Shown here: positions 9,201 through 33,200 of the stretch, piece after piece
Layout: each line of letters begins with the position of its first letter
Position numbering within the stretch: position 1 is the stretch's first letter
Translations under genes and position numbers: made by a program
DNA from: Oopsacas minuta
Lineage: Eukaryota; Animalia; Porifera
Reading direction: 5' to 3'
NCBI GenBank assembly: GCA_024704765.1
Contig: JAKMXF010000222.1
Coordinates: forward strand, 620,001-684,000
Length of the DNA: 64,000 nucleotides
The notes under the pieces: model-generated
Told to the model about the DNA's origin: nothing
Database searches by the model: none
Seen by the model: only the letters and a program-made list of their open reading frames with translations

Positions 9201-12200
9201 TATTTAGAGGACATTCTTAAGAGGAAAATATTATCTTATTGAAGCATTCTAATACTATGTAAATAGGTGTATGTAGAATTGTTTATTTACCTGTTATCTT
9301 AAGTAGGTTAGCCGCAGATTCCTCAGAGATGAGTGGGTCAGGAAGTTTCTGAAAAAAGCATTTTAGTGTTCCTGCAAGTGTGTATATGTTCTGAGTGTGA
9401 TGGGTGAGGTGAACAGAAGAGTCAGCCTCAAATTTGTTGATAAGATTGATCATCTCCTCTTGATTGGCTGGAATTCTATATATTCCCTCAGACTCCATTC
9501 CTAAAATGAGATTAAAATAGTAAATAATTTGGGATCGTGTTCTTGAGGATTTGGGAATGGGTAGGTTGATATCTTACATAGTGGTATAATTGTCCACAAA
9601 TCTATTCATAACAATTTCAAGGAAAACAATAGTGAATTGCTCCTAAGATAATATGTATGTTAATTTATTTAGTCAATGTATTCATAAATCGTAAGACCAG
9701 ATGCAGATATTATGCAATCTATCGATAAGTATACATCAGGCTAGTTCGAAATTACACATCTATAAACAGTGATTTATCAGATGCTCTGTACTAATTGTGT
9801 CAGCTGATGTAATGATTGGGTTGGTTTTAGTAGATAATTGACTGATTACTGCAGAGCTGAGTGCTACTATGTCTTTGATTATGTAGCAGTAAATATTCTT
9901 TGAATAAACCAGTAATAAACATAGGTTAGAGGTACTAATACCATTTTCTAAACTTCATCCCACCCGTATGCAAATGTTGAAATAAAATGAAACACTTGCA
10001 AGGTTAGAATAATGTAATTTCAGATATATCCAAAATTCGACAGAGATGATTTACACAACGTCACACACCAAATGGCATAATTGTATAGATGCTGAAAATA
10101 AGGTCATCTAGACATCTGGATTTAGCAATTTGTAATATAATATGTATAGAATTGGGGAATAACATTAGATATAGGTAACGTATTACAATAGCTGAAATAT
10201 CTTGCAATTGAGTGACACATAATTCAAGTAACCTAATACTCTGGAAGTTGAAATAATTAAGATTGTCCAAATTATTCTTACTCCATGTAATACACATATT
10301 GAATATATCAATCGTTGGGAAGCCAGCTAGTGTATCTTACAAAACCCATTATATAAATACTTTTGATTTAAATTATTAACAGATTACGGCCGAAGTGTTA
10401 CGTTCGTAATGAAAAATACACTAAATTTTACCACTTTGTTTTAACAAATTCCCGCACCAAAAACGAGATTTTAGGACCTTTTTGACGTCTCAAAATCACA
10501 CATTTTCCCGGCTGTATTGGCTAACCAAAAGTATTGCACCACATTGTAGGAATTTTATTATTTAGAGTTACACAATATCAGTACAGTATTTACACACATA
10601 TTAGTTGTCCTGTCACTAAATATTTGGTCTAGTCGGATCTCAAAACTTCCCGGACCAAATATATGTTATATTTAGTCCTGCTGGACTGAATATTTCAGAT
10701 TATATTGACTGTATTGGCTGGTGAAAACTAGAACAAAAACGTGGTTATATACAGTGCAATACAACATCTATAAGTAGAGTCTCTATAGTGGAGAACCTCT
10801 ATATGTCGGGCAATTTTGATCCATCTTCATTCATTTCCACAGAAACTAAGATATTTATGCCTTAAACCAGAGACTCCTTAAGGAGTCCATGCCTCAAACC
10901 ATAGATAATTACCTCTATAAGTGGGGAATTCCTCGATAAAGTTTATGGAATAATCAATTTTTGTGCTAATTGGAGATAATTAAGAATTATCGCTAGGATG
11001 AATAGAAAATTTTGGGTTTCTCAGAAGAGAATTTCTTACAATTCAACCAAAAAGCTTACAAGGTTTACTTCGTTAAATGTTAATCCGTTTGCCAAAAAGT
11101 TAAATTCGTTAATTCACGGGTTAGCTGTTAACGAATTTAACTTTTTGGTAACGGAAGGTAACGAACGATAATCCGTTAACGTTAATTTGTATAATACAAA
11201 CTACAACAAAATCAGTTTTTTGCTCTAAATACAACTAAAAAGTGTTAAAACTATAAAATGACCCTTTATTGGGTCTTCTTAAACGAAAATATTTGCTAGC
11301 ACAACTATGATATTGTATTAACAAGGAATAGTCATAATTGCTTTAACTGACTTGTACCGGAAGTTATTTAGTTCGTTAATCATTTTTAAAGTTAACTTAA
11401 AGGTTAAATCGTTAATGAAAAACTTAACTTCGTTAATTAATGATTAACGTATTAACGGTTTAGTACCCAGCTTTGAGGGCTATTATAATAGTAAATATCA
11501 GTGAAAAAACAGTTGTATTGACTCAAAAGGTTCTACTGTATACACTCCCTGGTCAAAAGTATCGGAACACTCTGCCACAATTGATACATGGCACAAATAT
11601 GCATTTACTTTAGTTGCATTGTCTGAAGATAGTTTCAAACATCTGTGAACTCAATTCTATCATTAATTTTATCATTACAATCGCCTTTTTTGATATATCC
11701 ACATACTATTCAATACGTATATTCTCGCAATGTGCCATATGCCACATGTGCCATATGCCACATGTGCCATTAGTGGTATGGTGTTCCAATACTTTTGGCC
11801 AGGGAGTGTATATAATCCAAGGAAGTTCGTACACTTTGTCTAGACTATTGAACAATAATTATCGACACAAAAGACACAATTCGCGTGACGTAATTAGCCA
11901 GGTAATTTTGAAACGCGAACAATTATCTCAATGAAGAGAGAAGTATACTTACAATTGATGAATTGTAGTAGAAGTTTAGTGATACACATTTCCCATAATA
12001 ACAGTGGCGTCACCTTAGTGGTAGTCATGATGACATAACAAATTATCAAAATTAACCACTCGCAAGACCAAAAACGTCTGAAATATTTGGTCCAACCGGA
12101 TCAAAAACTACACAGGTCAAATATCTCGGGGGCCTACGTACTATCCTGTGATCTGACATGAATACATACGTGATAATTAAGGTTATATAAACTGTACAAT

Positions 12201-15200
12201 TTAGTTACTCAGAGGAAACTAAACAAGATAATGATGCAAAGTATGTTATAGCTTACCGTTGGGGGACATTCCTTCTATTGCATTAACACATTGTTCTAAA
12301 AAGTCAGGAATATTCCTCTGTGGCGGAATAACCATCTCAAGGGGTTTACAAAAATAAGTAAAAGATTCTTCTGCCACACTGATTGAACTTTTAGCACAAG
12401 CGCTTTGAGGTTTACTTTTTCTCAAATTCTCTTTTGTTGATCTCCGTACTAACTTCTGTTTAACTTTTTCCGCCTATAAAAAATAATCAGCTCAAACAGG
12501 GAAATCAGATAATTGCGAGAATTAGATATTCGAGAAAATACAATATAAACGATTTGAATTGATATATTATGTTATACATATCAGAGAGACGTAGCAGTCA
12601 GAACCAAATCGATGGATCTGTACTGAACCAACTATCGGTCCTATCAGATTTCATATTTTTCTAGAGCGCAGCCGCATCTCTACAAGTCTGCATTATAGTA
12701 TGCAAGCATTAACACGATTAACAAAGCAAGTACTCAAATCTTAAAGGTATGTTAAGATCCACTGTGCCAAATTACAAACAAATCGCTATACTCTTTCAGG
12801 AAGGTTTAAGTTGTATATAAATTTCATGTTTTGGATCTGAGAATCATATTCTACACGTTGAACTACGTTATCGAAATATATCTTAGAAGAATTGAAATTC
12901 CATTACTAGTAACATCTCTTAGAATCATATATTGAAAACGTGTGAAATTCAGTAATCGTTAAAATTGTGTGTATATTTCTCTTCAAAAACCTGACACACC
13001 AAGTTATATCTTAGAATGTACATTCGTACCAATTTCAAGTTAATCAAATCTAATGTTCGTGTGGCCGAGAGAGCGTTTCACATTCTCTATTATAAATAAT
13101 AAATGAATTATTAATTGTTGTATAGTTCAATTGTATAGATATAAATGCAGAGAGTGGAAAGTTGATGGACAATTCTACTATTGCACCGTAGACATAAAAA
13201 AATAACAAAATCAAATAAATTTGCAACATACGTCAGCATATACTAGATAAAATTTTACATAATTGTATATATGAGGGAATAGCTCGAATCGAAATATTAA
13301 AGGACATGCCCCCATGACGGGTCCGTTTACCAGAAAATTATAAGAAAATGAATATGCAAAGTACGTACTATAGTGAAACATCATTGAAACTTGCGCTACT
13401 ATATCAATTTCACTCTAGCTAATTTTTGTATAAATATAGCAATGATAATTCAAGAAAGAATAAATTCAACAAAAATAATCAAAGATGGCATCAAGATACG
13501 ATTTGATTGATTCAGACTATCTCTCACTAGCTGAGCAGTATCAAAATTTAACGAAGGGAGAAAAAGAACAAGTAAAAAAGCTAAGAAAACGTTACAAAGC
13601 AAAGATGTATCAACGCGAGAAGAGACGTGATTATATGACACAAGTATCTTCGCTAGAAAAAGAAAGGGATCAACTCCAAAGGGAATTAAGCATGCTCAGG
13701 ATGGAAGTGACTGAGTTATGGCAAGAGGAAATAAAACTTTTACAGCGTTTGTGAGAACAAATTGTAATACAAATCACTTCACAGCGTGAAAGGGTCTTCG
13801 AGAGTCAAAGAAACCAACAAATTGAATTCATTAATATTTTTAATCTGTGATATTTTTTAATTTGTAATACTAACAATTGATATTAGAATCTTATATTTTC
13901 ATAAAATAATTGATACACACAATAAATTAACGGGGAATAAAATATAAACTATGTAGCAGCTCTAATTATCTACAAACCGGTTCTCAATCAATTTAACCCT
14001 GTAAAGCTAGAATACCCTTTTAACAAAACCTATATGTTGATTACAATGCTAATTATTAACCTGTGAAGGCCAAGATTATGCAGTTTGGGGGGAAAATATT
14101 CAGATTCAATTATTACATTGATCTTCCCAAATCGTTCAATTTCCAGGAGAGATAATAAACCGTTATAAGCCAAGTGAACTTGCCAATGTTCAACAAAACA
14201 AAGCAAAGCTGTAAATGGCACTGTCGCACATCCCATAGCGATAGCGTTCAAGGTAACTACGACTGGTGAACCAAAAATTACTCCGATTAATCGGGCCGAT
14301 AACTGTATTCCGCTTAAGAGGGTCAAAATGGCCTGCCCTATTAAGCGGAGTCAACCGTAGTTGAGAAAGTTAGAGGTTTTTCATTTTGAGCTTAAATTAC
14401 TAAAGCAAAACCTCTTCTAACCTCTTCAATCATATGCCCGTTGGAAGTCCCTGGTTCTAGACAGTAGGAAGTTTTAAAAACTTGTTAGGACAGAGTGAAT
14501 AATAACTATACCTATATACGTCTCATACTTACCAACCTCTTCTAACTATCTCCATGGATTTCCAATTTAAATGCAAATAATATCATTTTTTCCCTATTCT
14601 GGCTGGCAGAAAAAATCTTGAAAATACCCAATATTTTCCATGGATTTTGTATTATATTCAATACATAATATGTAATTATATCAATACTTAATTTTGAATT
14701 ATTTGAATATTGTTTGCGCAAGTAAATTAGTAATTTGTGCATGTTGCAGTATAAGTATAAATTTTGGTGTATTCGCGAATACACTGGTGTAAGTCCGAAT
14801 TCATTGTAACTAAATACATGTGGTTAGATATTTTTAGTATCAAATACAGTTTATCTACTTATCGCATTGAGTGTTGGCTTCTATTCCCGTTTCATTCAAT
14901 TCTTACATCCATTTTCTTACAATTCATTAAATTATTGGTCTATTATTCATTACCTTCCTCCAATTCTGTGTTAAGCCAAATTAAAGGCTCAAAAGGCTGT
15001 CTAATTATTCGCCAGGTCCCTAATAATTATTAACGTGTTAATTATGTACCTGTAGTTGGGATCTATGGAGGATTAATCCCTCCTCGGGGTTAGTGGAACA
15101 AGCGTGATTGAAGTGCTGAGATAATTGAGGATGTCCGTTATAGGTTTTGTAGTGAAATGACTGTGTCTAAACTCTAAACTACCTACAGTAGAACTAGGAT

Positions 15201-18200
15201 AAGACTTACCCCAGCGGGGGTCATGGACCCTTTGGAGGTTCACAGACGATAGCAGGGGGTCCACGGGTGAAAGAGGTTGAGAACCGCTGACAGGCTGACT
15301 TACCCTTTCTAGAAACAATTATTACGTAGGTAGTTGAGACAATGTGAAAGATGTTCAAATAAATGCTTCCATCATCCCCCGTAGATCCCAACTACAGGTA
15401 CATAATTAGCACGTTACTAATCATTAGGGGCCTGGTGAATAATTAGAGAGCCTTTTGGCCCTCTAATTGGGCTTAACACAGCATTGGAGGAAAGTAGCAA
15501 ATAATAGACCAATAATTTAATGAATGGTAAGAAAATGGATAGTAAGAATTGAATGAGACGAGAATATAAACTTTCAATGCGAAAAGCAGATTTGATACTA
15601 AAAATATCCAACGACATATGTTAAGTTACAATGAATTCGGACTTACACCAGTGTATTCTCGGATTAACCAAATTTGTACTTGCACTGCAAGTCTACAAAA
15701 TGCATATACCCCAACTCCAGACTATTTCTGAATGAAGTTGAATAATGATTTCTTAGATTAGGCCACTTTTAATAAGAAATTGTTTCAGCTCCACATGAGA
15801 TCCATCTGAGCATGTATGCGGGCGGGCAGTTCATAATCATTATCTCAATATTTTGTCACGAATCAGCAGAAAAATTTGTACAAAAGTAAAAAAGAGTTTA
15901 GTGATCAAAATCACTAGAGTCAAATTTGATATAAGAATATGCTCTACAAGAAAAGAGTTTCATTTCTACTATTATTTAGTTTACGTATACACTCTGGTGC
16001 TGAAATACACTGAGCAAATGGTGAAACATTAACAATATCCGCGAGTTTCCCAAATCAGTTGCGGGCGGTGGAGCTGAAACATGATTCCAACTAGTACTGT
16101 CCTTAAAACGAGATATTATAATATTCAACATATAAGATAACCTCGAAATATTCGAGAATCTAATTACTATCATATTCTAGACATTATCTCGGTTATTGGA
16201 GCCAGGTTAATGAAATAGAATTTTAGGATATACGTGACTAGGAACGTAAGTTAGTCGTGTCTATAACTATCTTAAAGATGTTCTGATAGACGTCCTCCCG
16301 GGCGCCCGACCCCTTGCCCCCTCCTCTCGGTACGCATCTATAACGACTTTGCTTTCTAATTAATTTGTATGCCATTATTTTTCAATGCGCATAATGAAAT
16401 CGCAATGATTATTATCATGAGTGATAAGTAAATACATGGAAAATTCGTGAAATTTCCCTTGGGTCATGAATCATCATGGGTCACAGATGTGGCCCCATGA
16501 CCCATTTGACTCATCAATTTAAGTGACCCATCTGTCCCATGACCCATGAACCAAGATCCCATTAACCAAGAGGACGATAATCCGCGACTGTGGATTACCC
16601 TAGCATACTGGTGTGGTCTTTGCCAAGGCAGCGCAGCCCAATTTAACAGAAACATTCTAATTTGGTATATACTGCTCTTGAAGGTTACTCACTGTAATAT
16701 CAATTCTAGTGTGTCAACAAGAAGCTATGCCCTGGACGACTCTGATTCCATATAGTGCCCAATATACCCTCAGCTGGATGGTTATCCCCCACCAGAAATT
16801 CCTGGATCAGCCACTGCATACGCTCCTTGTAATTTTCTTATGGGAGCGGCGTTTTTCACAGGTGCCTCGTTACGCCACTGAATTGTAATACTTAGAATCG
16901 CTGTTTGGTTTATCAGAACATGTTAAAAAGCAATCTCATCAATGTAATATCATTTGGTGAGTTTTCACCTGGTAATTCGGAGAAAATTTAACTTCTATGG
17001 CATGACTTTACGGACAAATCAATTTCTACTAACGAGTATGATATAGCATAGCATTCTATAAGGCAATGGCGCGGTTAATAATTATTGGACTAAGAATAGG
17101 ATAGGTAATTAATATATTGGACCCCTGTCGCTGATACACGTATTAACCCCTATGCATAGCGTTCATGTTAACGCAGCCAGATATTCTAAGCGCGTCATTT
17201 AGTGGGGAAAACGTGTTAAATGACCCGCTTTGGGGAAACACTGAGGGTATACCCTCCTGATTAGTATCTTAGCATTGAGGCTATTTGTTTTTATATATAA
17301 GTAATACTAATTGTTTTTGAAAATGGTTGTATGATATTAGTTAATTATTGTAAATTTTTCCTTTCGAATAAAATCTACAATTACAACCAATAATAAACCC
17401 TGGTTTGGCCTCGTAATTAGGTTACTATCATGATGATGTCACCTCCAGGGTTTCATCCAGATTTTCTGAACCATACGCCTAAAATCTTCGCCTTCATATT
17501 TACGCGCGCCTAGAGTATACATTTAGTATTACGGTATTGGGTCTTCCGCTAATTTTGGCGCGCCTCGGTCTATTTTTGCTGAAATTTATGCGCCTGTAGC
17601 CGCGTCGCATACGCCTGGATGAAACCCTGGTCACTTCCCATATCAAGAAGTGTATATAACTCAGTGGTAGTTTAGTGGGCGCCAATACAGATCATGAAAG
17701 ATCATTCTGCAAAGGGTGAATCAGCTATTGGTACCAGAACTGGTTCGGGCGTACCATTTATACCGACCACAACTGGTCCGGTGGTACTGCCGAGATTATA
17801 CCCCGTCCTCAAATATATTCGGTATGAAGTGGGCAAGACGAGAACTTAACCTCAGGGCAGTACAACCTGGGTTTTGCCCAGAATATACCCGGGCATACTC
17901 TGGGGCTACTACAGCGGGCCGGACCAATTATGACAAGGGTGGACCAGTTGTAGTCGGCCAAAACTGCCCTAGGCCAGTTAAAGCGTGACAGCCCCCTTAA
18001 ATGGAGAGACTTCCCATTTTTTCTATTTTAGTAGTCTATATGGGGGGGCCCCTTGTAAAATTGGGACCCCTCCAAATGAAAAGTTAAATTTCCACTTAGG
18101 AGGCCGACAATTTAAGGAGCCCCCCACAACTGACCCTACAGGTTTAGTCAAGTTTTATTCACATCGTTTACTCTATTGAAAAACACGTAATCAGAAGGGT

Positions 18201-18234
18201 TTTAATCCTCTATTATTATAGTACAAACAAGGAT

Positions 18235-18284
<50 letters not shown>

Positions 18285-21200
18285 GACGCCACCTAGATTA
18301 ATACAAATGGGGAGTACCCCTCCAAATTTAGACATTTACACTTGATAAATTAGAGAAATTAGAGGGGGCCCTCAAGTATAAATCTAACTTTTCATTTGGA
18401 GGGGCCTCATAGAATAGAAATAATTTTGGGTAATTCTCGAATTTCGGGGAGCCTCCCCAACTGAATCCCTACAAGGCATACCCCTTGGCTCAAATTGAAA
18501 ACTGTAAAATTTTGGCTCGCTTCGAACGCATCGTACTCTCATACATCATGCAATCTCACCCATATATCAGCGGGGATATCCCAATAAATATTCACCCAGT
18601 TTCCTACACTATTACTCCAAGGGACCAGAAAAATCACAACTTTCTGCCCAATTTCCACCAAACGTTCTTCTTGAGATGGGTTTCGCTCCTGGACCCGACT
18701 GATTGTTTACAGGGCCCATAGACCCTCATCTAGACCTTGAGGCTCACCAAATTGAACTTGTACTCCCCAGTTTTCAAGGATACAAGACGCCGCTGCCCAG
18801 TTGGATGGTTATACCCAACTAGAAATTTATAGATCCGCCACTTGCCATGCCTCTTGCTAACGCGAGAAAACACCTTGCCCCTTGTAATTTCTTTACCCCC
18901 TAAGTAAAAAATCCTGGCGACGTCCCTGGGCACTAGAGGGTCCTCAATTAAAAGATCAGATCCCGATCCTAAATCCCAAATGATCTATGATCCATTTTTG
19001 AAATACAGTTGAATATTTTGAATACTATAGACGTTTCGACTATAATTCATGATATGATTTTCTATTTATTAATACATACATGGGAGTGCTACCATCTAAA
19101 TTTAAGTTATTCTATGTGTAGGCGTTTGAGCCACTCTTCTATACTTAATTATTGGTAGCATTAAGTAACAACTTTGATTCTACATACTGTCGAAACCAGT
19201 ATTTACTAATAGCTATTTGCAGGAAAATGAAGTAAGAAAAAGGATGCGAATATATGTAAATCCATAGCTATGTTAAACCCCAAATTATTTACAACCTGAG
19301 AAATAAAGTTAAACAACTGATAAGTAGGAAAAGCAGGTTTCGACTGTACATTATTATTCTAATCTTCCTTTTGGATTGTGGATCATTAAACTAATTAATA
19401 GAAATATTGAATTGAGAGTTTAGAGTTAGTAACAACTTGTACTCGTTAGGCAGGCTTAATCAAGAATATAGCACTATTCTTGTAGATATTTGGAAGGATT
19501 GTTATATTTTCAGAAAATTATCGGTCTGATCCCGATCACGAACCCACTTTTTCAAATGGATCAACGATCCTCTTCTGATTCTCAAAAAGGATCTCGGTCC
19601 GGTGTCAGAGGGTCAGCTATCCCTCGGACTTGTTGCACTAGGGTCAGTAGCCCTCGGGTTCGAGTTGGATGGAGAGTATACCAGTATCCCTACCTAGAAA
19701 TACAAGTGATATTTCATTATACAGTTGAGGAAACGTTACGTAAAGCAATATTTCTTATATTAGACACCCCCTATTTGTGTCACACATTTTGATCATTTTG
19801 TAATACAAGAAGGATAGGGTTGTACCACTTTGCCTATCAACCCCTCCCCTTGAAGCGTTACATAACCTTTGAACAGCTCCTTGAAACTGGTTCATTTGAA
19901 ATAGGTTTTACTAGTACTATAGAAAGGCATTTTAGAAGTAGTACGATTATTTATCATTAGAATATAACATAATACTAGCGACAATGATGTCATAATTTCG
20001 TCATAGGTGTGAATTTTCGTCCAAGACTCGAAATGTCTGAGCCAGGCCTAAGATACCCCCTGTATGCCAATAATCAGGGCTGGGGGTCCTCCAGTTTCTT
20101 CAATCAATTCTGGGCATAAAATCATATATACACTCCCTGGTCAAAAGTATTGGAACACTCTGCCACAATTGATACATGGCACAAATATGCATTTACTTTA
20201 GTTGCATTGTCTGAAGATAGTTTCAAACATCTGTGAACTCAATTCTATCATTAATTTTATCATTACAATCGCCTTTTTTGATATATCCACATACTATTCA
20301 ATACGTATATTCTCGCAATATGCCATATGCCACATGTGCCATTAGTGGTATGGTGTTCCAATACTTTTGGCCAGGGAGTGTATATATATATATACACAAA
20401 TATATACAGATTAATTGCATTTTAATAGTATAGATCAGGTTATTTGGGGGTAACTCCAACTGCTACAGAGACGCCTGGCACTAGTGCTAGAAGTCCTGGT
20501 GGGTACATCTGACCCAAAGGGGGGACTATTGACTCTACTGTCACAAGTCCGGGGGACAGATGGCACAACAATACCGGATTATACAATCTTTTATCGAAAG
20601 ATCATAATGTCCTACATACATGCCAACATTCGTGCGTTACGTCAATCCCTGGGCACCAGAAATTTGTTTGTCGCTCCCTACTCTCGCTCGTGTAAGTAAT
20701 CCCCTTACCTAAAAGATAAAGATTAACAACTGACTCATCCAACAAAACCACCTTGAGACTGACAGACTTGTGGATTTCAATTGTTGCTACTAAAATTATA
20801 TTTGATATTATTTGAAAAAGGCATCAAACCCACAAACAGTAGTTAAATAATTAATAATATCTGATATTTTCGTTGGGGTGCTCTTGGATGGCAGAACACC
20901 GGGCCCCAGCACTCAGGAAGCTCCTGAGCCCCCTCTTTGCTCTGGGTCCTAATTCGGTTACGCTACTGGGGGGGGGCATTATTATAGTCCGCTCGGGAGG
21001 CATTATTATAGTCCGCTTGGGAGGCATTTTGTCGCAGTACGCCACTGTAAATGATAATATATGGATTAGGTCACGAAAATATTACGTGATAAACAAGTTA
21101 AATTTAAAGTGGTTGAATATTCCAAATCTTGGCACCTTCTTAACCGTGCAATATTTATCTTGAAATTGTATTACAACGGGGGTCCCAAAAGTTCCCGACC

Positions 21201-24200
21201 CTGGTCATAGAATTAGAAGATATAGGATATTGTATTATGTATCTGTATTCATAACGACCCTTATTCTATTATCTATCCAGAACTACTTTAACTTTCACCA
21301 TATCGTCAATAATTTTCTGGTTACGATTATTTAAAATTTCTCAGTTTTAACTATCCTTGTATTTTCCAGTATTTATGGCTTCAAATTTGAAATTGGAGCA
21401 AAGATTCTATATCAAAATTCGATGCTTCTTGGTATTGGCCCGAAGGATATTCTAATTGACTTGGAAGTCGTTTACGGAGATGCTAGTCTTTCAGATACTA
21501 CTGTGAAGGAGTGGGCCAAGCGGTTTTGTGAAGGACGAGAGTTACTGGAAGATGAGGAACGAATCGGGCGTCCCAGATCCGCCATCACTAGCAGTAACAC
21601 CTCTGAAATTCGCTGGAGAGTGGAAGAAGATCCTAATATCACTGTTGAGGAGTTAGTTGTGAGTGTAGGGATCTCAACGGGAGCTGTTCCTTCCATACAT
21701 ATCAATGAGCTAAAAATTAGCAAAATTTGTTCGAAGTGGATCCCACATTCCCTTACAAAGGTCCAATAGGACCGTCGGGTAACTTGTGCAAGAAAAATGC
21801 TCTCCGAGTATAAAGACTCGGATCCAAGAAGGCTGGCAGAAATCATTACTGGTGACGAGACTTGGATAAGATACGACGAGCCACTACCAAAGAAAGAAAT
21901 AAGGTATGGGTCGTAAAAGGTGAGGCGCCTCCTCTCAATCCTGGGCCGGACTTCAGAGATCAGAAGGTCCTGTGCTCAATTTCCTTGATACACATGGCCC
22001 AGTTTCCCAGATAATAATACCAAAGGGGAAGACAATTACCGGGGACTTTTATGCCAACAGTTGCCTCTCAGAAGTAGAAAAACATTACTGGGAGCGGAGG
22101 CCAATGTCTAGACGGCGGGGCATGCAATTATTGCACGGTAATGCACGGTCGCATAAAACTAAGCTCGTAAAGTCAGAGTTGGATAGAATGAGAGTTGTCG
22201 AGCTGGATCACCTACCCTACTCACTTGATCTCGCTCCTTGTGAGTTCTGGCTCTTTGCAAATTTGAAAAAGGACTTTACAGGCAGGCATTTTGACACCAG
22301 AATGACCTAGGGAACGCAATTTGGAGATCCCTAAAAGACGTACCGCCCGAAGACTATAAAAATGTATTTTTTAAATGGCTAGATCGTCTAAACGAGTTAT
22401 AGACGTTAATAGTGATTATTTCGAGAAATATAACAATTGTACATGTATATTCTGTATAGTTACAAAAATATGGGGTAGGGTAGGGAACTTTTTGAACGCC
22501 CGTTGTAATATCGTTCAGTAAAAGACACATATGACATTTAATAATACGACCGCGCTCCTTTGCTCGCGCTACGCGGTTGCGAACACTTTGTTTCCCCACT
22601 CGGGCTACGGCCCTCGAGTATATAAACTCATAATCTTAACCGTAGCAAACATGATACTGCCATAATCTATAAATCTGCTTACTTTATGTCCCCAAAAGTG
22701 AATAAATATTCACAGTATATTGTTTACAATATCATATTTGGGCTCAGCATATTAGATTACCCCAGTATAGTCGTTGAAAGTATGATTCTACCACAATTTT
22801 GAAATTTGTTTACTTTATATTCATAAAACAACAATAAATTTACAAATGCAAAATTCGGATTAAGCGTACTTAGTTACCCCTGGGTAACCGTTTAAACCAA
22901 ACGAATTTACATACGATTACTCCAAAAGTGTGAAAATTGGATTCAGCATGTTCAATAAATTTAGTGAAGTCTTATTGAATTATACTTACTTCCTTGATAA
23001 ATACGATAATAATCAAACAACAATTGAGATTTAATAATATAGATTTATAAATTGGGATGTCAGGATCTTCGACAATCCAACTGAGAAATTCGAAGCAATC
23101 CAATTGAATGAAATTGTAGCAATCGGCAATCGAAAAATTGTTTCATGGATTGAATTGACAACCCTGATTTTAAGACGAGGGAAATGTGCAAAAAGCGAAA
23201 ACCTGGCTAATACAAATATTGTACATCAGGGGAGCAAATAAAAAGTGGTCAGGCAAAATTGGTCATGTTGCCTGATCGGTCCGAAGGGTTCCACCGGACT
23301 CCAATGCATATCTAGCCAAAGAACAAGATCGGCTAAAATACAGCATTTAAAAACCAGAGTGAACAATATCACAGAATTGTTATGTGTAATGTTTGTCGGG
23401 TTCCTGGATCCGCCGCAACACCAGACAGGAATATTTATAGGATTCGTTTACAACATTGTTGGTTAGATAATATATACATACTGATACACTATGATAAGTT
23501 AAACTAATTGTGTAGGTAGTTTAATGTAATAGTACTCTCAATGATAATCAAATCAAAGTTGGTCATTAAATGGAATTTACTTAATTGAAAAGTTGGTATA
23601 TGCTTTTGGAGAGGATTATATATTTCTGAGCATTATATCACTGATGAAATATAGCATTGCCGTCCTATGATTTAACAGTTAAGCAAAATTCATATAAAGA
23701 AATATTTTAACACCAGATATCAAAACCAAAATATAGTTATTAATCTATAAGAACCTAATGAACACTGAAAAATAGACACGGAAGCAAAATCTCAGTGATT
23801 TAACTATAAATGACTCTTGGGAGTTATTAAAGTAGGATACATAGAAAGATATGGATTGCAGTTATCTTACATATGAAGAGTTAGTTGAGTGCCAAGACAT
23901 AGATTTAGACAGACTACCCTATTTAAATAGGAAAGAGAAAAAGTACATTCGAAAAGAGAGAAGAAATCTAAGAGCAAAGAGATATCAACGTGAGAGAAGA
24001 CAAGATTACCTCCAAGACATAAACAATTTAGAGTTAGAAAAGGCTCGCCTAGAATTAGAGTTAGCATTTATCGTAAAAGAGAGAGATGAGCTTTGGAATA
24101 AAGAACTCAAACTATTAAAAAGTCTTTGAAAATAATATTGCAATTTGTATGCATTAATAACTTACTTCCATAATTAATGAGAAACTAGTGCGGTTCTCTT

Positions 24201-27200
24201 ACTTGGTCGCTGCTCGACGGCATCAGCTCTTCGTGCCTCAGATTTAGTTTATGTATATGAAACTTCTAAATTTCTTATATAGTAGTTTTTGTTGCTACGC
24301 AACGGGATATACTTAGTACTCAGTGTGAGATTTAGGAATGTGGGGCTCGTGTTCGAGTGCAATTTTGGGGGCCCCTGGCACATTGGCGGCTCTATATACG
24401 AGTTAAAGTTTGGCACCATGCCAATTTTAAGAGTAACGTAGCCTTCAAAGTTGCCCACCTGTCTTTAAGCCAGAATTTGCAATGCTTATGTACGTATTCT
24501 CTATTCAACTTGACGCTTGATATGGAAATTTTGCATTATACTTCAAGCAAGATAATTGGAAAAATAATAGATACTTAAAAATTACTTTAAGCTCCAGCAA
24601 ATATGTATACCGAATTTTAACATACATCACTAAAATCCGGTAAAATTTTCATTTACCAAAGATGTTAGGCATTTCGAGGGAATATTTTGATTTTGTCAAA
24701 TACAAATTTTGAAAAAATATCTGCCTCGCTCTATGTGGGTATATTTAAATTTTTACAGGAAACCAAAAGTACAGGATGATATAGAATTGTAAGGCTTTCT
24801 AAAATGAATGTACGTACGAAACTACAAAAGTAACCAAGTTATGACCAATTAAAGTTTGTGGACAACAACAAATTTGTTGTTTGCCACTCCCTGTGCTAAC
24901 ATCGAGCGAGGTTAATTATTTTTTGAAAATTCCACAATATCAAAAATCTTCCCTCGAAGTGAGCTTGAAATGTGTAAAAAATGCAAGATTTCGATGCATG
25001 TTGAAAAAGTATATTTGCTGGTGCTTAGAACAATTTTTAGGCATAAAGCAGAACTCGGTTATTACGTACTTGTTGTCTCTCTATCCTTGTACAAATGGTC
25101 TAGGAAATTATTCAGATAAAACGTACTTCAGTTAGTATTGAGCATGGTGTCAAGCCCTTTCTAAAAGGCTCAAGTCCAACTCAACCTTAAGTAAAAAGTG
25201 ATTAAGTTCAACCCATTTTAAGCCTTTATTAGAGAATGGGCTTAAATCCAAGCTCAAGGCCTTGACACAAAGGGCTTAAGCCAATACTTACAAATACGTG
25301 CAATCCATGGTCTGTGGGATAACTCAGAAATGTTGGAACTCCATCACGACAATATTTTTATATTTTGTACAAAAACGGCTTTTGATCATTTGGAATTTCA
25401 ACATTTTGAACATAGATTAATAATTAACGTTCTGCATGGTTTCAAAGATGTAACATTTTAAATGCATATTTGCCAATTAGACTAGTAGATGACGTCACTT
25501 CGATCTGTATCTTCTCACACAGGTAGGTCTTGCACAGATGGCCCCACACGTGTGATGGTGTTTCGCCCAAACTCCCTCATTTTCACAACGGATGTATATT
25601 CTTTGAATAGCTTCTAATTAGAAGATCTGTTAAGCTTCTATGTTTCGCTACTGTGTGTATTTATTGATAAAAGCATGAAACTTTCCAAATTACATCTAAA
25701 TAAAGTATGAAGTGATTCTAGACGTGGAAACATCTTGAAAAAGGTCTCTGATGCTTGTATCAGCCATTTTTAATGTCACATTTTTGCGACACATTTCGAA
25801 TATCTCAAATCCTTCCTAACTTCCAGCAAGTTGTACTCTAATCCAATTTTTATATCGATATTCGTCATCAACATAAAATTTCCCTTCGTTTAAGTGGTCA
25901 CTCAAATAATTTGGGAATTTTTTCCCTAGCAATGCAGGAATGTCCCAGGAAAGCCACTAGGCTAGCTGGGTCTATTTATACACACATCGACCCTCGATAG
26001 TATAGTTTAACACGATTTTAATACATCGTCCTCTGCGGTCTCCTAATTTTCATTTTTGCATATCTCTCACAGAAACACGATTTTCTCGTTTCATCCCTGT
26101 AGCAAGCAATCCTATCACTTGAAGTAATCTATCCTGAGTCAGGTAATATTTATACGTTTAGAATTTTCATATTTCGATCCACTTGTGTGAAATTTATTCT
26201 ACCTATTCTAGGCACTTACAGGCTTCCAGATTTACTGCCTCAACTTTATTTCATACTTGGTCAACTGGAAACTCAATTAGAAAGACCAATAGACAACGGA
26301 TAACTATGATAACTATGATTTTATCATTAAAATCCCACTTGGCATCACATGCTTGTTATAAGCAACTTCGAGGGATGGATTGCATTACCTTGCCATATGA
26401 ATCTTCACTAAAACGATTATATTCCAACTTTGGTCTGAATACAGAATTCCTAACTTATTTGAGAGCTGAGACTACTGAATTTAATGAACTTGAACGTAAT
26501 CTCTGCCTGAACATGGATCAAATACATATGAAGTCTAACATTAAGTATAAAGGCTGGTTCGATATTATAATCATAACTTATTGATATATGTGTAATATTT
26601 AATTCTTCTTACTTTCTAACTACTTTTCTATAGCTGGAAAATTTATTGATTCGTAGAGTGTTCTAATGATTTTCTTGAGGTAGAACCTGCCAAAACATCA
26701 TTCTGTGTTTTTAGTGTCCAGTTTATCGAGAAAGGTCCTCAGTAGTACGTTTATTGCCTTAATCTAATCCGAAAGCATCTGATCTACTCCCAATTACACT
26801 ACAAGTTATCAGGGATATAGAGCAGTTAGACCTATTTGTAGATGTGATAGTTTAGATAGCTATCTACTTAATGTTAACTTTTTCAAATTACTTGGCCATA
26901 GTAAGGAACTTCTACCATATGTACTACACCCAAATAATAACAAACGGTCACGATACTTAATCTTTGATTTTGTACATATATTAATGACTATCAGGAATAA
27001 TTGGCTAAACCAGAAAGATTACAATTGTACATTCACATTTTCGTGTTTTCAAGATATCTACAATTCCATCTATCCAGTTAGACAGTCAAAAGCAGCTCTT
27101 CAAGGTAACAAAAATTTAATATACGAACTCGATACAATATAATAGTCTTTGATTCGTATTTTATAGGATTTGAGGTTACTCTATTAATTTGAAAATTTTC

Positions 27201-30200
27201 TGTGGCAAAGATTGCTCCACGGTTGATATACAAGGCTTGTTGGCCATCTTGTTTGTAATGACAGAGTGCATCACTTGGACTCAGGATTTTTGAGGAAAAG
27301 AATGTAGCTGCACTTACTATTAATCAATCTCATTTTAGAGAAGTCGAAAGAACAAAGTAATTGTTTACTCGATTTGTTTTGTTGTGTCTGGAAAATTTTC
27401 AACATAAACACAACTTGGAAAGGTCATGTCACAACGATCAGGATTCTTTTCCACTAAACTAAATGATAACCGATTTCAGCTATTATCTACTATTGGTATT
27501 TGACTAGAACAGTGGAGAGCATTACCAATTATTCATGGCAAGTTGACACTTCAAACTTTCACAAGCTTTCGTCATTCAAAAAATTCTGCATCTGATCGTT
27601 GTATCAATTTAAAAATTGAAAGTGAGGACAGTAATGATTGGACTTATGACTTTACTGACTGTTTTACTGAATGAAAGTCGATACTATATCATGTATGAAA
27701 CTGCAAGTGATTGCATACTAAATAATAAGGCAAATAATATTAACTATTTTACAACACATAGCCAATAAAAGAACCTTGGAAAAAGAGCCTTAACTAAGTT
27801 CAAATAGTGTGTGCATGTATTTTCAGAGAATTTTGACAGAAGCAAATCATTACATTTAGAATAGTATCTGTTAGTTGATTATATTGTAATCAAAATCCTG
27901 TACTCATTTGACACTTGAATGATTCCCATTTTTATGCTATATAAAATATAGTAAACTCGACTTCCTGTTATCCCTGATCCAAAGTAGTGATCAGGCCTTA
28001 TCTTTAGTAGGCTATGGATAGGGATAAATTATAGGGCCCTCTACACCCCGCGATATCCGCCACTGAAAGAATGTTTCCGAAAACCTCAAATTATACTCTC
28101 TGTATAGCACTTTATGCTGAATCTGAATTTCGCACTTAGAAAACTATTTACCACGGGTTATGTACCAACATTCCATGTATGTATTCCTTTCCTATAGAAA
28201 CTATTGAAAATCTTGTGCATCAGAGTGTCGCCCAAAAGATTCGAATTTTGAGCTGAAGACTTATATCAACACCACTAACAAGACATCCAAACTGAGAATG
28301 ATCATAAACATTTGATGTTTTTGCCCACTCTAGTATATATATATAAATACAGTGGAACCCGGTTAATACTATTAATGAATAAGACAAACAAATATTTGTA
28401 CACAATCAAGCCTTAGAATGGTCATTCAATTGGTATTACTCAGGTTATCATGAACTCCCGAACTCCCGATAATGCGAACAATATTGACTGTCCGTTGGTG
28501 TTCGTATTAACGAGGTTCCATTGTAAATATGTTATGGGCAGTATGAGAAATTGGGCATTATACATAATCCCAGGCAATATGCATAATGCTACTCTTATTG
28601 GACAATATACGAAATACAATAATCCTTACGCAATATATAATTTTCTTACCTTGATATCAGTAATTAGTATAACACTTTCGTCAGATTAACAAACTTATTC
28701 AATAATGAGGTTTAATCATATCTATGTTAATAATGTTATGGATGATACATAAACTTGAAAATTAATCATAAATAATTGGGGATATCTTTCCCAAATATGT
28801 TTTAGCTAGTTATTCTTCTATACATACTCAGCTACTTGGCTTACGTTTATTCTTTGCTAATAGTACTATGAGGTCTCTATTTTCACAACTCTACTTATTA
28901 CTGCAGCTTTGGTTGTTGTGACACCTACTATGACATAGTAGATTTGAACGATAACACTTGCACGTAGTACGAAGAGATGTTTTCTTACAAGAGCAATGAA
29001 ACATCCCTTGACCTGTCCCAACTGATTCATTGCGTGCTACTTGTCGCAAAGAAATCTCTTTTCCTGTTTGGACATCATTTATCTCCAAGAATTTATCCAG
29101 GCATGGAGTAAATTGATTTCTGGTGTAATGCGAATTCATTAGACCGTATTTTGTACCTAGCTTGTAGGTACCATTATGCTCGACTGCCACAACAACTGCT
29201 TTAATGTTTCGAAAGTCACCTTTACCTCGATCTATGGCAAAATATAAAGGGTCCAATGGAGACCACATAAAGTTGACGTACTTGGTTGAGGAGAACCACT
29301 TACGACATAGATTGTCCGACCGGAATGCATATAGCGGAATCTAGCATGATAGAATATCCCATATCTACGATCAGTTTTCATTAATTGAATAAATTAAAAG
29401 TCGCATAATTATTACGAGGCACTCTAAGAGTAGCACCATGCAATCAGTGACGGCGCTAGAGAAGCGGCTAGAGCCCCATCAAGTGGTGGGGCCTGAGAAG
29501 TAAAGGACTAGGATCTAGAAAAAGTATTTAAATCTTAAACCTTTATTACTGACTGCTTTATATACATTTTAAAAATTCAATATTGTGTAACATCTAATTT
29601 AGAATAATCGCTATTGCAATATTATCACATTTAAAATAATCACCATTTTCTTTAATCCGAATATATAGTAAGTTTTGCAGACCTAGAACTATCAATTGGA
29701 AACTAATATAATTATCTGCCCAAGTATGGATCGCTTTAATAAAAAGAAAAAATCGTGGTGAATTCGACACCTGAAAATTCCAGAGCCACTAGTAAAATTA
29801 GGAGATGAGATTAATGAGATTACTAATTATTCCTTATGCATCAATTTTCCAACCTATTTTAATTACTATCTTCCTCAATTAAACATACCGTAGCTATTAA
29901 AAAATATAATTCGTATAAGGTTTGTTAAATGGACAGCTGATTCTAAATTATTCATAATGTTCCTAAAATTAATTACTATACGCGTATTTTGCTTCGATAA
30001 CTTATAATTAAACGTTTAATCCCTTCAACCACGGAGAGCTAGCGCCTCCACTGATGCTATAAGAGTAGCACTATGCATATTGCTTGGATATTATACATAT
30101 TGTCCAATAAGAGTAGCATTATGCATATTGTCCCTGGACATTATGCATATTGTCCCTGGACATTATACATATTGTCCCTGGACATTATACATATTGTCCC

Positions 30201-33200
30201 TGGACATTATACATATTGTCCAATATGGTGGCATTATGCATATTGTACAATAAGAGTAGCATTATGCATATTGTCCAATATGGTAGCATTATGCATATTG
30301 TACAATAAGAGTAGCATTATGCATATTGTACAATAAGAGCAGTATTATGCATATTGTACAATAAGAGTAGCATTATGCATATTGTCTCTAGACATTATAC
30401 ATATTGTCCAATATGAGTAGCATTATGCATATTGACTAAGAAAGTAGCATTTTGCATATTGCCTGGGCATTATACATAATGACCAATTTCTCATATTGCC
30501 CTTAACATATACACAAACAGTGGATTTCGTTTTTTAGCAACTCGTATTTTTGCACAAATTTCCATTACTCAGACGCGAAGTTGCTATTAGTGGCACTTGG
30601 GTCCTGAAAATAGGTTACTCATATGCGAATATGGCTATTAAGCGAGTTGTTAATAAGCGAACTCCGCTGTATATACAGATTACATGCGTATTAATTGCAT
30701 AGATATTTAATAGCATAGATAATTAAAAAATTGCATTATTAAAGTGCTCGTAGATAGCCAAGTTCTAAATTCCATAGTTGATCTCGCTCACGTGTTATAA
30801 TTTCCAATTCCTTTTCTAACATAGCTTTTTCAGCTTGTAATTCATAAACCTCTTGTAAATAATCCTGTCTCTTCTCGCGTTGATATACCTTCGCTTGGAA
30901 GTTCTTCCTTAACTTCTTCATTCGCCTTTTTTCATATCGATTAAGATAGTTTATGTCATTTATATCTATTGACTCATTTTCAATTATATCTTTAAAATAA
31001 ATTCCAATTTCTTTCGCTGACATGATTGTACTTATCTTTTTACTACCATAACAAATCTACGCGTATTTATAATGGTTATAAGCTCTATTGTTAGAAATAC
31101 TGCTTGCTATAAATGTCTTACACTGAGCAGTTTATGAAAATAGGAATAATTTCTTAGCAGATATACGTATATTCGATATTACTATCAAATCTAGGTCGGC
31201 GTCTATCTAAGTCGGGGTCAACAACCCCAGTAAGCGGGTCTCGGATATAAACATATTAATTGTGAACTCAAATTTGGCTATTCAATTAAAATCCAAAATA
31301 ACATACACGTGTAATATTTTTTCGAACTATTCCTTGATTGAATGGTGAATAAAATGGTTCCAACATCGTTCAAGTACGGACTTTAGTCATGTACATCGTA
31401 TTTTACAATCAGTAAATAAAATACTGGAATCAATATTAGTATTGAGTCATCCTAACAAATTCACATACAGTAGAACTCGGTTAAGACGTACTCGATTGGG
31501 AAACAAAAAAGTACGTATTAACCGAAGTATGATGTATCCGAGGTACATCTTATCCGAGTACGTCATATTAGAGTACAGTAGACGCTCGTTAATACGTACA
31601 GCAGGGGACTGCCAGAATTCGTACTCCTTATCCGGAGTACGTATTATCCGAACTAATTTACATTGAAAAGGCATCGAACGGGGCCAGATAAAGTGTACAA
31701 ATTTGTACTCCTTAACCGTGTTCGTATTAACGAGACTCTACTGTACGTAGTAACCAGGCCAAGGTTGTTAGTAGCATTATGATTCTACGTACATAGTATA
31801 TGAATAATGACCCAGAAATAATTATTATTAATAGAAGTTTAGCAATATCCAGATTTCTAACGATTAGATAAAATCCTATTGTGATTCGAATCAGATTTGA
31901 TAATATAAAATGATATTTACTGCTCTTATCATTGAGACGTCTTATCCTAATACGTATTAACAGAATCATTTATAATGGATTAAATAGAACAAATTTCGGT
32001 TATTTTAGACAAGTAAGTTTGTATCTGCATTAATTCCATGTATTCAATACTGTTCTTGCCCTTTATCGCGTTATATTCCGTAATATTAATATCATTGGGA
32101 GTATATTTTCTTGAAAGTTTTATGTTATATATCAAATAGAATACGAAACTTCAAACTAGGATAATGATAATACCTTTTCCATATCCTTCTTTTCTCTTTT
32201 AGAAAGAGTACGTTTCATAGGTTCCTATAAAAAATTAAAACATTAAATAAGTTAAAGAAAATATGATCAAATTGATATGAAAATATTACATATTGAATGG
32301 TAACTACGTCAAGACTCTAAGACTTAATGTTGATTAGTATGACAGGGACTGAGTAGAATTTGAGCGATTAAAAATCAATGAATGATTCCGGAATTCTTTA
32401 GTTATTATCTTTGATTGCTTTTCTTAGTTGAATGAGGTTAATATCACCTGCTATTCATAAAATGATAAAATGGATAGTTGCAAAATATTAAATTCCTTAG
32501 AACTTAATTATTGCAACTTTCGATATGCGAGTATATTACAAAACTACAGATTGTATTGGGAAGATTTGTAAAACGCTTACTTACGTAAGTTTGAATAACT
32601 ATGAAATAAAATATGGATTACCTCTGGACTTTCTAGAGAAGTGGTGTGTAAGATATCAGGATTTTTACTGGATTCAATAGTAGAATAGTCCACTTCAGTA
32701 GTTTCTCTATCTTTTGAAGAAGTTGTCTGATAATCGTTTGATGAGTTAGAAAGAGAATTTGGTTCAGGAAACTTTGGTCTCGATGATGTGGTGAGTTGGT
32801 TATTAAGTGAACTGGGTGAAAAGAAAGCATATAAATCAAATTCGTGAAATTTGGCCTCAATTTACAGTTAATGTGAAACCATGAAATCTCCCTATATTGA
32901 AAGATAATAATTATCATAATACAACTGAGTTGGATTAAGTTTACTGAGGAAATTATGCCAGCGTTACAAATATTAAAAATTTGCATGTACCCTAAATTGT
33001 TGACTTCGCAATAATAGATGATTTATGGAATCAGTCACCAGGATAACCATATATGGGATCAGTGTTTCAGCTTGTTTCAATCGGGGACTGGAGTGGACTG
33101 TACTGAATCGGACCGACAAGGTATCATCAAGAATGTTCGTCAAAGCATTAATCGCAATTTCGAATAGTAACTTGTGCATAAATAAAATTTACCGCCGTCC

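Follow-up and report, generated by a model that had tools for sequence, protein, structure and literature searches.

Small, intronless Maf-type bZIP genes with a recoded basic region in glass sponges

The 64 kb stretch of the Oopsacas minuta (Hexactinellida) genome analysed here, hereafter the window, contains exactly three intact ORFs with a basic region and a five-heptad zipper, in agreement with a preliminary description of this DNA, which had reported three such ORFs of 89-94 aa. Copy 1 (orthogroup A) is an 89 aa ORF at 13485..13754 on the plus strand, copy 2 (orthogroup B) a 92 aa ORF at 23851..24129, also on the plus strand, and copy 3 (orthogroup C) a 94 aa ORF at 30739..31023 on the minus strand. 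A tblastn search of the 64 kb window found no fourth copy or fragment. The nearest in-frame stops lie 2, 2 and 11 codons 5' of the respective ATGs, so the ORFs of copies 1-3 cannot be extended without splicing. Copy 1 is present in the GenBank annotation and copy 2 is fused there to a mariner fragment (KAI6654394.1). Copy 3 appears to be unannotated, since the database searches found no protein identical to it.

A TATAAA precedes each ORF. In copy 1 it belongs to the box TATAAATA (13429..13436, plus strand), 56 nt 5' of the ATG, which is invariant in six of six aligned orthologous loci. Copy 2 has a TATAAA at 23805..23810 (plus strand), 46 nt 5' of its ATG, and its orthologous loci have TATA-like motifs at similar positions, less strictly conserved; copy 3 has a TATAAA at 31066..31071 (minus strand), 48 nt 5' of its ATG, with the orthologous loci aligned. 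By background alone, one TATAAA would be met in roughly every kb of each strand. Downstream of copy 1, blastn conservation with loci L002, L003 and L004 extends from 13755 up to 13899 (plus strand), a probable 3'UTR in which the alignment of orthologous loci contains invariant blocks, and AATAAA occurs at 13921 and 13936, 3' of this flank. RNA structure within the copy 1 3' flank is not supported (-1.9 kcal/mol, no covariation).

The three copies appear to be nested between minus-strand exons of a RhoGAP gene. A RhoGAP-domain exon of the host gene is found at 9286..9573 on the minus strand (PF00620, 55.6 bits) and is conserved with L003 and L004. An island of coding conservation at 12253..12382 (minus strand), syntenic with the same two loci by blastn, is read as a further RhoGAP exon; the minus-strand open frame that covers it (12249-12473) has no Pfam match of its own. 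On the other side of the cluster, a conserved island at 32170..32239 (minus strand), with syntenic blastn matches in L001 and L002, is a probable host-gene exon. Within the proposed intron of ~19.7 kb (12.4-32.2 kb), the only syntenic conserved islands are the ORFs of copies 1-3. The remainder is rich in transposon debris and high-copy repeats, and the neighbouring transposon ORFs had rightly been described as broken: they are fragments only, one of them HTH_32-like (21422-21769) and the other (26183-26584) weakly similar to a TNP-like RNase H domain, at a score under the threshold (17.8 bits; cut-off 24.6). No flanking repeats are common to the three copies.

In other glass-sponge assemblies, that of Vazella pourtalesii among them, orthologs of copies 1-3 keep their order beside the RhoGAP exons. 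All three orthologs are intact in L002, L003 and L004, in the same order and orientation and with RhoGAP adjoining; RhoGAP ORFs adjoin the copy 1 orthologs in L003, L004, L008 and L009, and the copy 1 ortholog of Vazella pourtalesii adjoins RhoGAP and a Ras-family gene. Species belonging to at least two Lyssacinosida families share this gene order, and the DNA between the syntenic copies is unalignable across species. Orthologs of all three copies are intact in other species, with the same lengths and start codons. Amino acid identity is 84-88% between copy 1 and its orthologs (omega 0.03-0.04) and 77-80% for those of copy 2 (omega 0.09-0.16), whose orthogroup has 98/99 support in the tree, while the relatives of copy 3, 92-94 aa long and found in several assemblies, are 71-79% identical (omega 0.06-0.17). 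Across the three copies dN/dS is thus 0.03-0.17 (NG86), with dS saturated, and differences between orthologs pile up at third codon positions (e.g. 9/6/39). The intact orthologs of equal length elsewhere and the third-position differences place these ORFs far beyond chance. As far as sequence comparison can establish it, copies 1-3 are real, separately maintained genes, each with a putative TATA box and each under strong purifying selection. The dN/dS values and the conserved synteny bear out the earlier proposal of a selected family rather than pseudogenes.

The three genes belong to a family of intronless Maf-type bZIP genes of 77-101 aa, in which every member with an identifiable source is from a glass sponge. 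Each protein is made up solely of what is left of the Maf extended homology region (EHR), the basic region and a leucine zipper of five heptads, without an effector domain. In copy 1 a short N-terminal helix is followed by the basic region, with A39-K-M-Y42...R47, and by the zipper. The spacing A39-x7-R47-x9-L57 is present and the zipper d positions of copies 1-3 read LLLLL, LLILL and LLILY. The EHR is only partly present in these three proteins, cut down to one helix (residues 4-18 in copy 1). Copies 2 and 3 are identical at 40 of 69 positions (58.0%), matching the ~58% given previously, and the motifs LTKGE, MTQ and LTYEELV quoted at that time are all present.

The Maf-type assignment made in the preliminary description was supported by Pfam, with PF03131 (bZIP_Maf) the only family matched. 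Copy 1 scores 30.1 bits, above the gathering cut-off of 22, which neither copy 2 (14.8) nor copy 3 (17.2) reaches on its own; among 27 family members, 21 have a match at E<0.1, the lowest E-value being 4e-9, and bZIP_1 and bZIP_2 are absent among the 25 most-matched Pfam families listed. The PDB profile matches of the family are MafG, MafB and MafA, and the top six Foldseek matches of the copy 1 model are all Maf. The HMMER alignment of the family to MafG is ungapped across the basic region and the first three heptads of the zipper. The equivalent of MafG Tyr64, the Maf-specific Tyr (PMC9756947), is present in 34 of 34 members.

A fourth subfamily, D, of 100 aa and at another locus, is more Maf-like than the copies in the window. 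Its profile matches MafG at 30.1 bits (E 3.9e-6), MafB at 27.7 and MafA at 26, and native Nrf2 at 15.6, and its HMMER alignment to MafG spans the EHR. The AF2 model has three helices (13-18, 21-30 and 35-99), and its top 12 Foldseek matches are all Maf (probability 0.99-1.00, TM 0.62-0.80, 31-34% identity), with an rmsd of 1.4-3.0 A over 80-91 columns. A profile search of 1.84 billion representatives found no closer canonical relative, and no relatives of the family were found in viral contigs or JGI metagenomes. Within the family, only subfamily D is represented by a transcript, a Vazella Trinity contig. Of the other sequencing runs, X1-X4 are genomic DNA: 58-83% of a largely non-coding stretch of 7.8 kb is present in them, and three of them cover the tested 5.9 kb evenly. 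Run X5 is ambiguous, one of its contigs starting upstream of the TATA box.

Among known proteins the Maf family (PF03131; MafG, MafB, MafA; 3a5t, 4auw, 4eot, 7x5e) is the best match to the sponge family in both sequence and fold. The two share EHR-type helices before the basic region (full in subfamily D, reduced in copies 1-3), the N-x7-R-x9-L spacing, the Maf-specific Tyr, the terminal Arg and the five-heptad zipper, and subfamily D also has the equivalents of MafG Arg57 and Thr58. The sponge proteins differ in being merely 77-101 aa long and encoded by intronless genes, and in their basic region. CNC/NFE2 proteins (Nrf2, Skn-1, NF-E2) also match PF03131 and carry a helical accessory motif ahead of the basic region; the family profile can be aligned to Nrf2 as well, across the basic region, with a single gap of 3 residues that falls in the N-terminal accessory part. 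However, CNC proteins have Ala, as does AP-1, where the sponge family and Maf have Tyr; Nrf2 scores about half as many bits as MafG, and CNC folds match subfamily D much more weakly (20-25% identity), ranking below all Maf chains. A CNC/NFE2 identity was therefore rejected. Within the reach of profiles and predicted folds, these comparisons show that the family descends from a MAF-type and not a CNC-type gene. It had been described more narrowly as small-Maf-derived. The Maf-type descent stands and the word 'small' does not, because the small-MAF and large-MAF orthology groups arose after the cnidarian-bilaterian divergence (Jindrich & Degnan, PMC4736632). The small size of the sponge proteins is presumably independent, convergent with that of small Mafs and derived from an ancestral MAF-type gene. 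Like MafF, MafG and MafK of bilaterians, they have the architecture of a DNA-binding and dimerisation module without an activation domain, and would likewise be expected to act as obligate partners or competitors; small Mafs, however, keep the canonical N...YA..CR signature and bind the MARE.

The basic cores quoted for the three copies, RYKAKMYQREKRR, NLRAKRYQRERRQ and NFQAKVYQREKRQ, are present in the window. When the family sequence ykAkvYqrekR is aligned on lkNrgYaascR of MafG, the Asn is replaced by Ala, AASC by QRE[KR], and the Tyr and Arg are kept, as had been reported. The Asn of N-x7-R, equivalent to MafG Asn61, whose direct contact with a base confers MARE specificity (PMC9756947), is Ala in 34 of 34 members; A39, K40 and Y42 are likewise invariant, and R47 is found in 97%. 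The YAxSCR contacts are not kept. Copies 1-3 have Y-Q-R-E-K/R-R and subfamily D has Y-D-T/A-S/A-K-R, so that Ala-Ala has become Gln-Arg or Asp-Thr/Ala, Cys has become Lys, and only the terminal Arg is retained. The canonical base-contact positions number five, of which four (N, A, A, S/C) have been altered together. The change had been attributed to the three paralogs; it is present in all of them but is not theirs alone, since subfamily D, with its complete EHR fold and an RRT motif, nevertheless has Ala at the Asn position. Because the recoding is common to a subfamily at another locus, it is older than the local duplications. The base-contact signature N-x2-Y-A-x2-C-R became A-K-x-Y-(Q/D)-x2-K-R ahead of the split into four subfamilies and has been frozen since. 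The statement that no named family with this motif was recognised also holds, as none was found in the libraries and papers searched.

The explanation we consider the best, and hold with some confidence, is that this is a Maf-type bZIP family with a rewritten basic helix, predicted to bind nucleic acid at sites other than the MARE, whose members act as partner or competitor subunits. The proteins would dimerise through the zipper. Its g positions are mostly Glu, and in a crude rule-based count copies 2 and 3 show E-E repulsion as homodimers, for which reason these two probably prefer partners other than themselves. The basic region may still bind nucleic acid, as it remains strongly basic, helical and highly constrained; its specificity would no longer be MARE-like, since the hydrogen bond from Asn to the flanking C is lost and two small Ala residues are now Gln-Arg. 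Since there is no activation domain, the proteins would act in a small-Maf-like manner, retargeting or repressing as partners or competitors within dimers. The simultaneous change of four contact positions could, however, mean that sequence-specific DNA binding is lost and not retuned.

The preliminary description had left open whether the proteins are dimerisation decoys or factors with a new specificity, and its decoy part is weakened by the conserved, strongly basic and predicted helical basic region. As dominant-negative decoys, the proteins would pair through the zipper with Maf, CNC or AP-1-type bZIPs to give DNA-blind, inactive heterodimers, in the manner of CHOP, Id and the A-ZIPs, which are also small and dimerisation-competent with a non-canonical basic region. 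The small size, the lack of an effector domain, the substitution of the Asn, both Ala and the Ser/Cys, the importance of Asn61 for MARE binding and the heterodimer preference suggested by the g positions are all consistent with this. In CHOP, Id and the A-ZIPs, however, the basic region is missing, broken or acidic, and a region that has nothing left to read would be expected to drift, turn acidic or become helix-breaking. In copies 1-3 it is neither absent, acidic nor broken by Pro or Gly: 12-14 of its 27 residues are Lys or Arg, with no Pro or Gly, and A-K-x-Y is invariant. Per-site amino acid divergence among orthologs is lower in the basic region than in the zipper for copy 2 (0.05 vs 0.21) and copy 3 (0.18 vs 0.29), and the two are tied in copy 1. 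In the AF2 model of copy 1 (mean pLDDT 89.4; helices 4-18 and 24-88) the basic helix is continuous, with pLDDT 86-89 over residues 21-40 and 93-99 from residue 41. Moreover, Zta mutants at the conserved Asn, including those with non-polar replacements, retain DNA binding, and their specificity is new or relaxed (PMC8756438). A basic region at least as constrained as the zipper favours a working, re-specified helix over a dead decoy, and we regard decoys as rather unlikely. A reading of ancestry, compatible with either mechanism, is that subfamilies A-C and D are not extra paralogs but what the single ancestral sponge MAF gene became in glass sponges through fast evolution; the lineage would then lack a canonical Asn-bearing Maf, these proteins having taken over its role, for example as CNC/NFE2 partners. 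We entertain this tentatively. The presence of Ala in subfamily D despite the EHR fold and RRT motif it keeps, the lack of a closer canonical relative in the profile search and the reported absence of key metazoan core genes from the O. minuta genome (PMC10280926) point towards it, whereas the sponge genomes studied so far contain MAF and NFE2 families (PMC4736632).

Loss of the Asn has a parallel in the oomycete 'novel bZIP classes' C-R, R-R and V-R, which are conserved and expressed without it (PMC4046829). These too are lineage-specific, duplicated bZIPs that keep the Arg and are presumed functional with a new specificity; they differ in coming from an unrelated lineage, in not being Maf-type, in having Cys, Arg or Val in place of the sponge Ala, in being full-size and in their demonstrated expression (PMC4046829). 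Common descent with these Phytophthora classes seems unlikely because the sponge family is, by its best matches, Maf-type and animal-specific. Redeployment of the basic helix to RNA or to an acidic protein surface, raised for the oomycete classes (PMC4046829), would mean that the sponge family serves as a coiled-coil adaptor and not as a transcription factor. Base-contact positions that are rewritten yet conserved and highly basic would fit, but the Maf-type fold, spacing, Tyr and terminal Arg are all kept and there is no positive pointer to RNA or protein binding, and we consider it improbable. That the ORFs arose by chance, are pseudogenes in decay or were carried into the intron by a transposon or virus might be suggested by the debris-rich intron and by the mariner fragment in the GenBank model of copy 2. 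This is scarcely credible given the low omega at saturated dS, orthologs identical in length and start codon, syntenic position and order amid unalignable DNA, the lack of viral or metagenomic relatives and the lack of shared flanking repeats, and sequence evidence, as far as it goes, already refutes it. Under the interpretation we prefer, that of a re-specified Maf-type basic helix, the three genes provide a natural test of how the Maf-type bZIP class reads DNA.

The three recoded bZIP ORFs lie on the plus strand at 13485-13754 (copy 1, 89 aa) and 23851-24129 (copy 2, 92 aa) and on the minus strand at 30739-31023 (copy 3, 94 aa). All three were found intact, at exactly the coordinates and with every motif that the preliminary description had quoted, and its figure of about 58% identity between copies 2 and 3 was reproduced (40 of 69 residues, 58.0%). 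No additional copy or fragment was found in the 64 kb window by tblastn. The window is AT-rich (30-41% GC). The ATGs of copies 1, 2 and 3 are preceded by in-frame stops at distances of 2, 2 and 11 codons, respectively. The sequence TATAAATA is found 56 nt upstream of the copy 1 ATG and is invariant in six loci, while TATAAA, which has a background of approximately one per kb per strand, is found at -46 in copy 2 and at -48 in copy 3. Since the ORFs have their own TATA and are conserved, selected and syntenic, they look, from their sequence features, like three compact, independent, intronless transcription units. Past the copy 1 stop there are 145 nt with conserved blocks, followed by AATAAA, and this stretch (13755-13899) is probably a regulated 3'UTR. 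An RNAalifold analysis of the conserved 3' block did not support an RNA structure, and a comparable conserved 3' flank is absent at copies 2 and 3. The blocks 3' of the copy 1 stop, AAATCACTTCA, CTGTGATA and TAACAATTGATATTAGAA, are identical in four to six species.

Copy 1 has its own NCBI protein record and copy 3 is apparently unannotated in GenBank. Copy 2 is included letter for letter in a 173-aa GenBank protein, KAI6654394.1 (P0008), which identifies the window as DNA of the glass sponge Oopsacas minuta, and the sole UniProt label is an automatic bZIP-domain tag on this mis-modelled copy. In the aligned upstream regions (about 150 nt) of copy 2 orthologs the reading frame does not carry on. 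Because these frames are not continuous, and because a stop lies two codons before the copy 2 ATG, the KAI6654394.1 gene model looks like a prediction artefact. The model, which spans 21422-24129, joins a mariner-type HTH fragment (ORF 21422-21769) to copy 2 by splicing.

The proposal that the copies are a selected family and not pseudogenes is borne out by the orthologs, in which dN/dS (omega) is 0.03-0.17 and both synteny and length are kept. Nei-Gojobori estimates of omega are 0.03-0.04 (copy 1), 0.09-0.16 (copy 2) and 0.06-0.17 (copy 3), at dS values from 0.6 to beyond saturation, and the differences are concentrated at third codon positions (for example, 9/6/39). Ortholog lengths and start codons are all unchanged. 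Three loci from other assemblies (L002, L003 and L004) repeat the order and relative orientation seen in the window, with orthologs of copies 3, 2 and 1 followed by RhoGAP exons. A DNA comparison over ~12.4-32.2 kb found the three ORFs to be the only syntenic conserved islands, the remaining matches being dispersed repeats. Flanking islands are present at 9286-9573 (minus strand, with a RhoGAP domain at 55.6 bits), 12253-12382 (minus strand) and 32170-32239; these fit a position of the whole cluster inside one RhoGAP intron of ~19.7 kb.

The window also holds repeats. In genomic runs word depth rises from a background of ~100 to about 1,100-18,000 in the segments 10379-10575 and 11561-11954, which are therefore very high-copy repeats within the RhoGAP gene; many different loose ends are found at 11810-11816. 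A dispersed repeat of ~150 nt is present in several copies each in O. minuta (in the window at 19980-20226, 50049-50195 and 58745-58886) and in another hexactinellid assembly (L002, at 5371-5523, 11223-11374 and 17418-17565), with 70-81% identity. Possibly this is an ancient or constrained element resembling a SINE or MITE.

A search of 5.8 billion clustered proteins recovered full-length relatives of copy 3, of 92-94 aa and with 71-79% identity, and the contigs that encode these relatives carry the whole arrangement described above. A fourth subfamily, D, lies at a separate locus (L005 10001-10303; also L013-L020). Its members are 95-100 aa long with the motif RRTERAKMYDT/A-x-KR, and the locus is syntenic, being flanked by a gene for a ~2070-aa RdRP plus helicase and by a Peptidase_M24 gene. 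The subfamily D protein P0030 is an exact match to a Vazella pourtalesii Trinity protein in EukProt, and the assemblies that encode it (ERZ23487945, ERZ26869290 and SRR11455651) also carry P0018, an ortholog of copy 1. Vazella (Rossellidae) therefore has copy 1, which adjoins RhoGAP and a Ras-family gene and is 88% identical to copy 1 of Oopsacas (Leucopsacidae). In ERZ26869290 both copy 1 (L010 74-343 and 1472-1741) and subfamily D (L016 1124-1426 and 3001-3303) occur twice, inverted, with both copies of a pair on the same contig, which reflects either a recent inverted duplication or a palindrome created by the assembly. When 1.84 billion representative proteins were searched with a profile, just ten matches reached E<=0.001, three of them unrelated coiled-coil lectins, and an HMM scan of ~248 kb (the window plus L001-L012) found no divergent mini-bZIPs beyond the known members. 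An origin from a virus or mobile element was considered and rejected, there being no relatives among viral contigs or JGI metagenomes.

The assignment to the Maf type holds: the sole Pfam match is bZIP_Maf (PF03131). It is hit by 21 of 27 members at E<0.1, and the listing of the 25 most-matched families includes neither bZIP_1 nor bZIP_2. Copy 1, at 30.1 bits, passes the cut-off of 22, and copies 2 and 3 fall below it at 14.8 and 17.2. Homolog searches brought up family members alone, and Maf descent was judged from per-subfamily profile scores against PDB and from fold searches, as a proxy for an outgroup-rooted tree. The subfamily D profile scores 30.1 bits with MafG (E 3.9e-6), 27.7 with MafB, 26 with MafA and 15.6 with native Nrf2. 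Its alignment to MafG spans the extended homology region and places RRT-x2-A-K-x-Y over RRT-x2-N-R-x-Y. The AlphaFold model of subfamily D (mean pLDDT 86) has three helices, at residues 13-18, 21-30 and 35-99; Maf chains take all of the first twelve places among its PDB matches (probability 0.99-1.00, TM 0.62-0.80, 31-34% identity), with CNC proteins ranking well behind. For copy 1 the model (mean pLDDT 89) consists of a short and a long helix, and its top six matches are Maf. Subfamily D is the most Maf-like member. In a maximum likelihood tree of family members, subfamily D is separated from a clade of copies 1-3 with 100/99 support. Each Oopsacas copy clusters with its orthologs from other species, not with its neighbours in the window, which indicates that the duplications and the shared recoding are older than the sampled speciations. 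The label 'small-Maf-derived' is, however, wrong, since the split between small and large MAFs has been dated to after the cnidarian-bilaterian divergence (Jindrich and Degnan, PMC4736632). The small size of the sponge proteins is convergent with that of small Mafs.

In bZIP domains the Asn of the N-x7-R motif, which reads the bases, is taken to be the defining residue. When the family is aligned to MafG by HMMER, the sponge sequence ykAkvYqrekR lies over lkNrgYaascR. All 34 distinct members have A39, K40 and Y42 and, in the zipper, L57, L64, L68 and E74; R47 is present in 97%. In MafG a direct hydrogen bond links Asn61 to the flanking C, the neighbouring G is read by Arg57, and the Maf-specific determinant is Tyr64 (PMC9756947). 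Compared with MafG, the sponge family has lost the Asn contact but retains the Tyr; at the position of Arg57, copy 2 and subfamily D have Arg, and copies 1 and 3 have Lys. The basic region is not decaying. It has 12-14 Lys/Arg per 27 residues, and in the model it forms one unbroken helix (pLDDT 93-99 from residue 41 and 86-89 over residues 21-40). Among orthologs, amino acid differences per site in the basic region and zipper are 0.05 versus 0.21 for copy 2 and 0.18 versus 0.29 for copy 3, the basic region varying less than any other block in these two copies; in copy 1 the two regions tie for variability.

The family is a conserved Maf-type module of dimerisation and basic helix, without an effector domain. 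Copies 1-3 would dimerise through the zipper. The g positions are mostly Glu, and in a crude rule-based count homodimers have an E-E clash in copies 2 and 3 and an E-R pair in copy 1; because of this clash, the zipper sequences hint that copies 2 and 3 prefer heterodimers. One explanation of the recoding is that these proteins are dimerisation partners unable to read DNA, that is, decoys comparable to CHOP or Id. This reading, on which the preliminary description had placed weight, does not account for the basic region being the most constrained part of the protein, and we regard it as rather improbable, if far from negligible; otherwise the earlier interpretation, apart from the small Maf label, was largely right. 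Replacement of the Asn in Zta results in shifted specificity or non-specific binding and does not abolish DNA binding (PMC8756438), and in oomycetes whole classes of Asn-less bZIPs are maintained and expressed (PMC4046829). We therefore favour a basic helix that would retain a specific ligand, most likely DNA read with a non-MARE specificity. A broader possibility, which we advance only tentatively, is that intronless mini-Maf bZIPs have radiated extensively within glass sponges alone, with several rewritings of the supposedly universal bZIP base-contact code, A-K-x-Y-Q-R-E-K-R being one class of several. These proteins would have a dimerisation network of their own and would read DNA motifs that are read by no canonical bZIP, possibly replacing a lost canonical Maf. 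On this view copies 1-3 would be functional transcription factors whose DNA specificity is new and conserved.

The sole subfamily with a transcript on record is D, as the Vazella Trinity contig. Four sequencing runs (X1-X4) were rejected as expression evidence as they behave like genomic DNA and contain 58-83% of a 7.8 kb stretch that is mostly non-coding; X1, X2 and X4 have a uniform depth of ~100x and zero splice joints at the RhoGAP exons. A fifth run (X5), from 2024 and a different organism, was chosen for containing copy 1 and covers, at 95-99% identity, only 13339-13757, which comprises copy 1 and the 146 nt before it; the adjacent intron and RhoGAP exons are absent at the 95% threshold. 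One of its contigs begins ~90 nt before the conserved TATA box; the run is ambiguous and was not counted as evidence of copy 1 expression. It could come from a close relative or from an O. minuta population with copy 1 alone above 95% identity. The Logan contigs L006 and L007 (SRR2064712) likewise look genomic and were rejected as transcripts. In Aphrocallistes vastus a bZIP 'with unknown function', Avas.s001.g868.i1, is upregulated in the growing osculum (PMC10282587), and might belong to the recoded family.

We found no description of a recoded mini-Maf family in the literature searched and no mention of bZIPs in the O. minuta genome paper. Cut-offs of 100 aa for ORFs are common for transcriptome assemblies, and proteins of 89-94 aa fall below them. 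Because of this, and because in GenBank one gene is apparently unannotated and one is mis-modelled, censuses of glass-sponge transcription factors probably undercount the family. The 'small Maf' architecture, which combines DNA binding and dimerisation and lacks an effector domain, arose independently outside bilaterians. Of the five contact residues the sponge family has replaced four, the Asn among them, and the new version of the basic region has stayed fixed in four ancient paralog groups and in at least two families of sponges. This rewritten and then conserved version offers a natural experiment on how bZIPs recognise DNA, complementing the Asn-less oomycete classes and the Zta mutagenesis work. 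The family bears on the evolution of the bZIP recognition code in a way that is directly testable.
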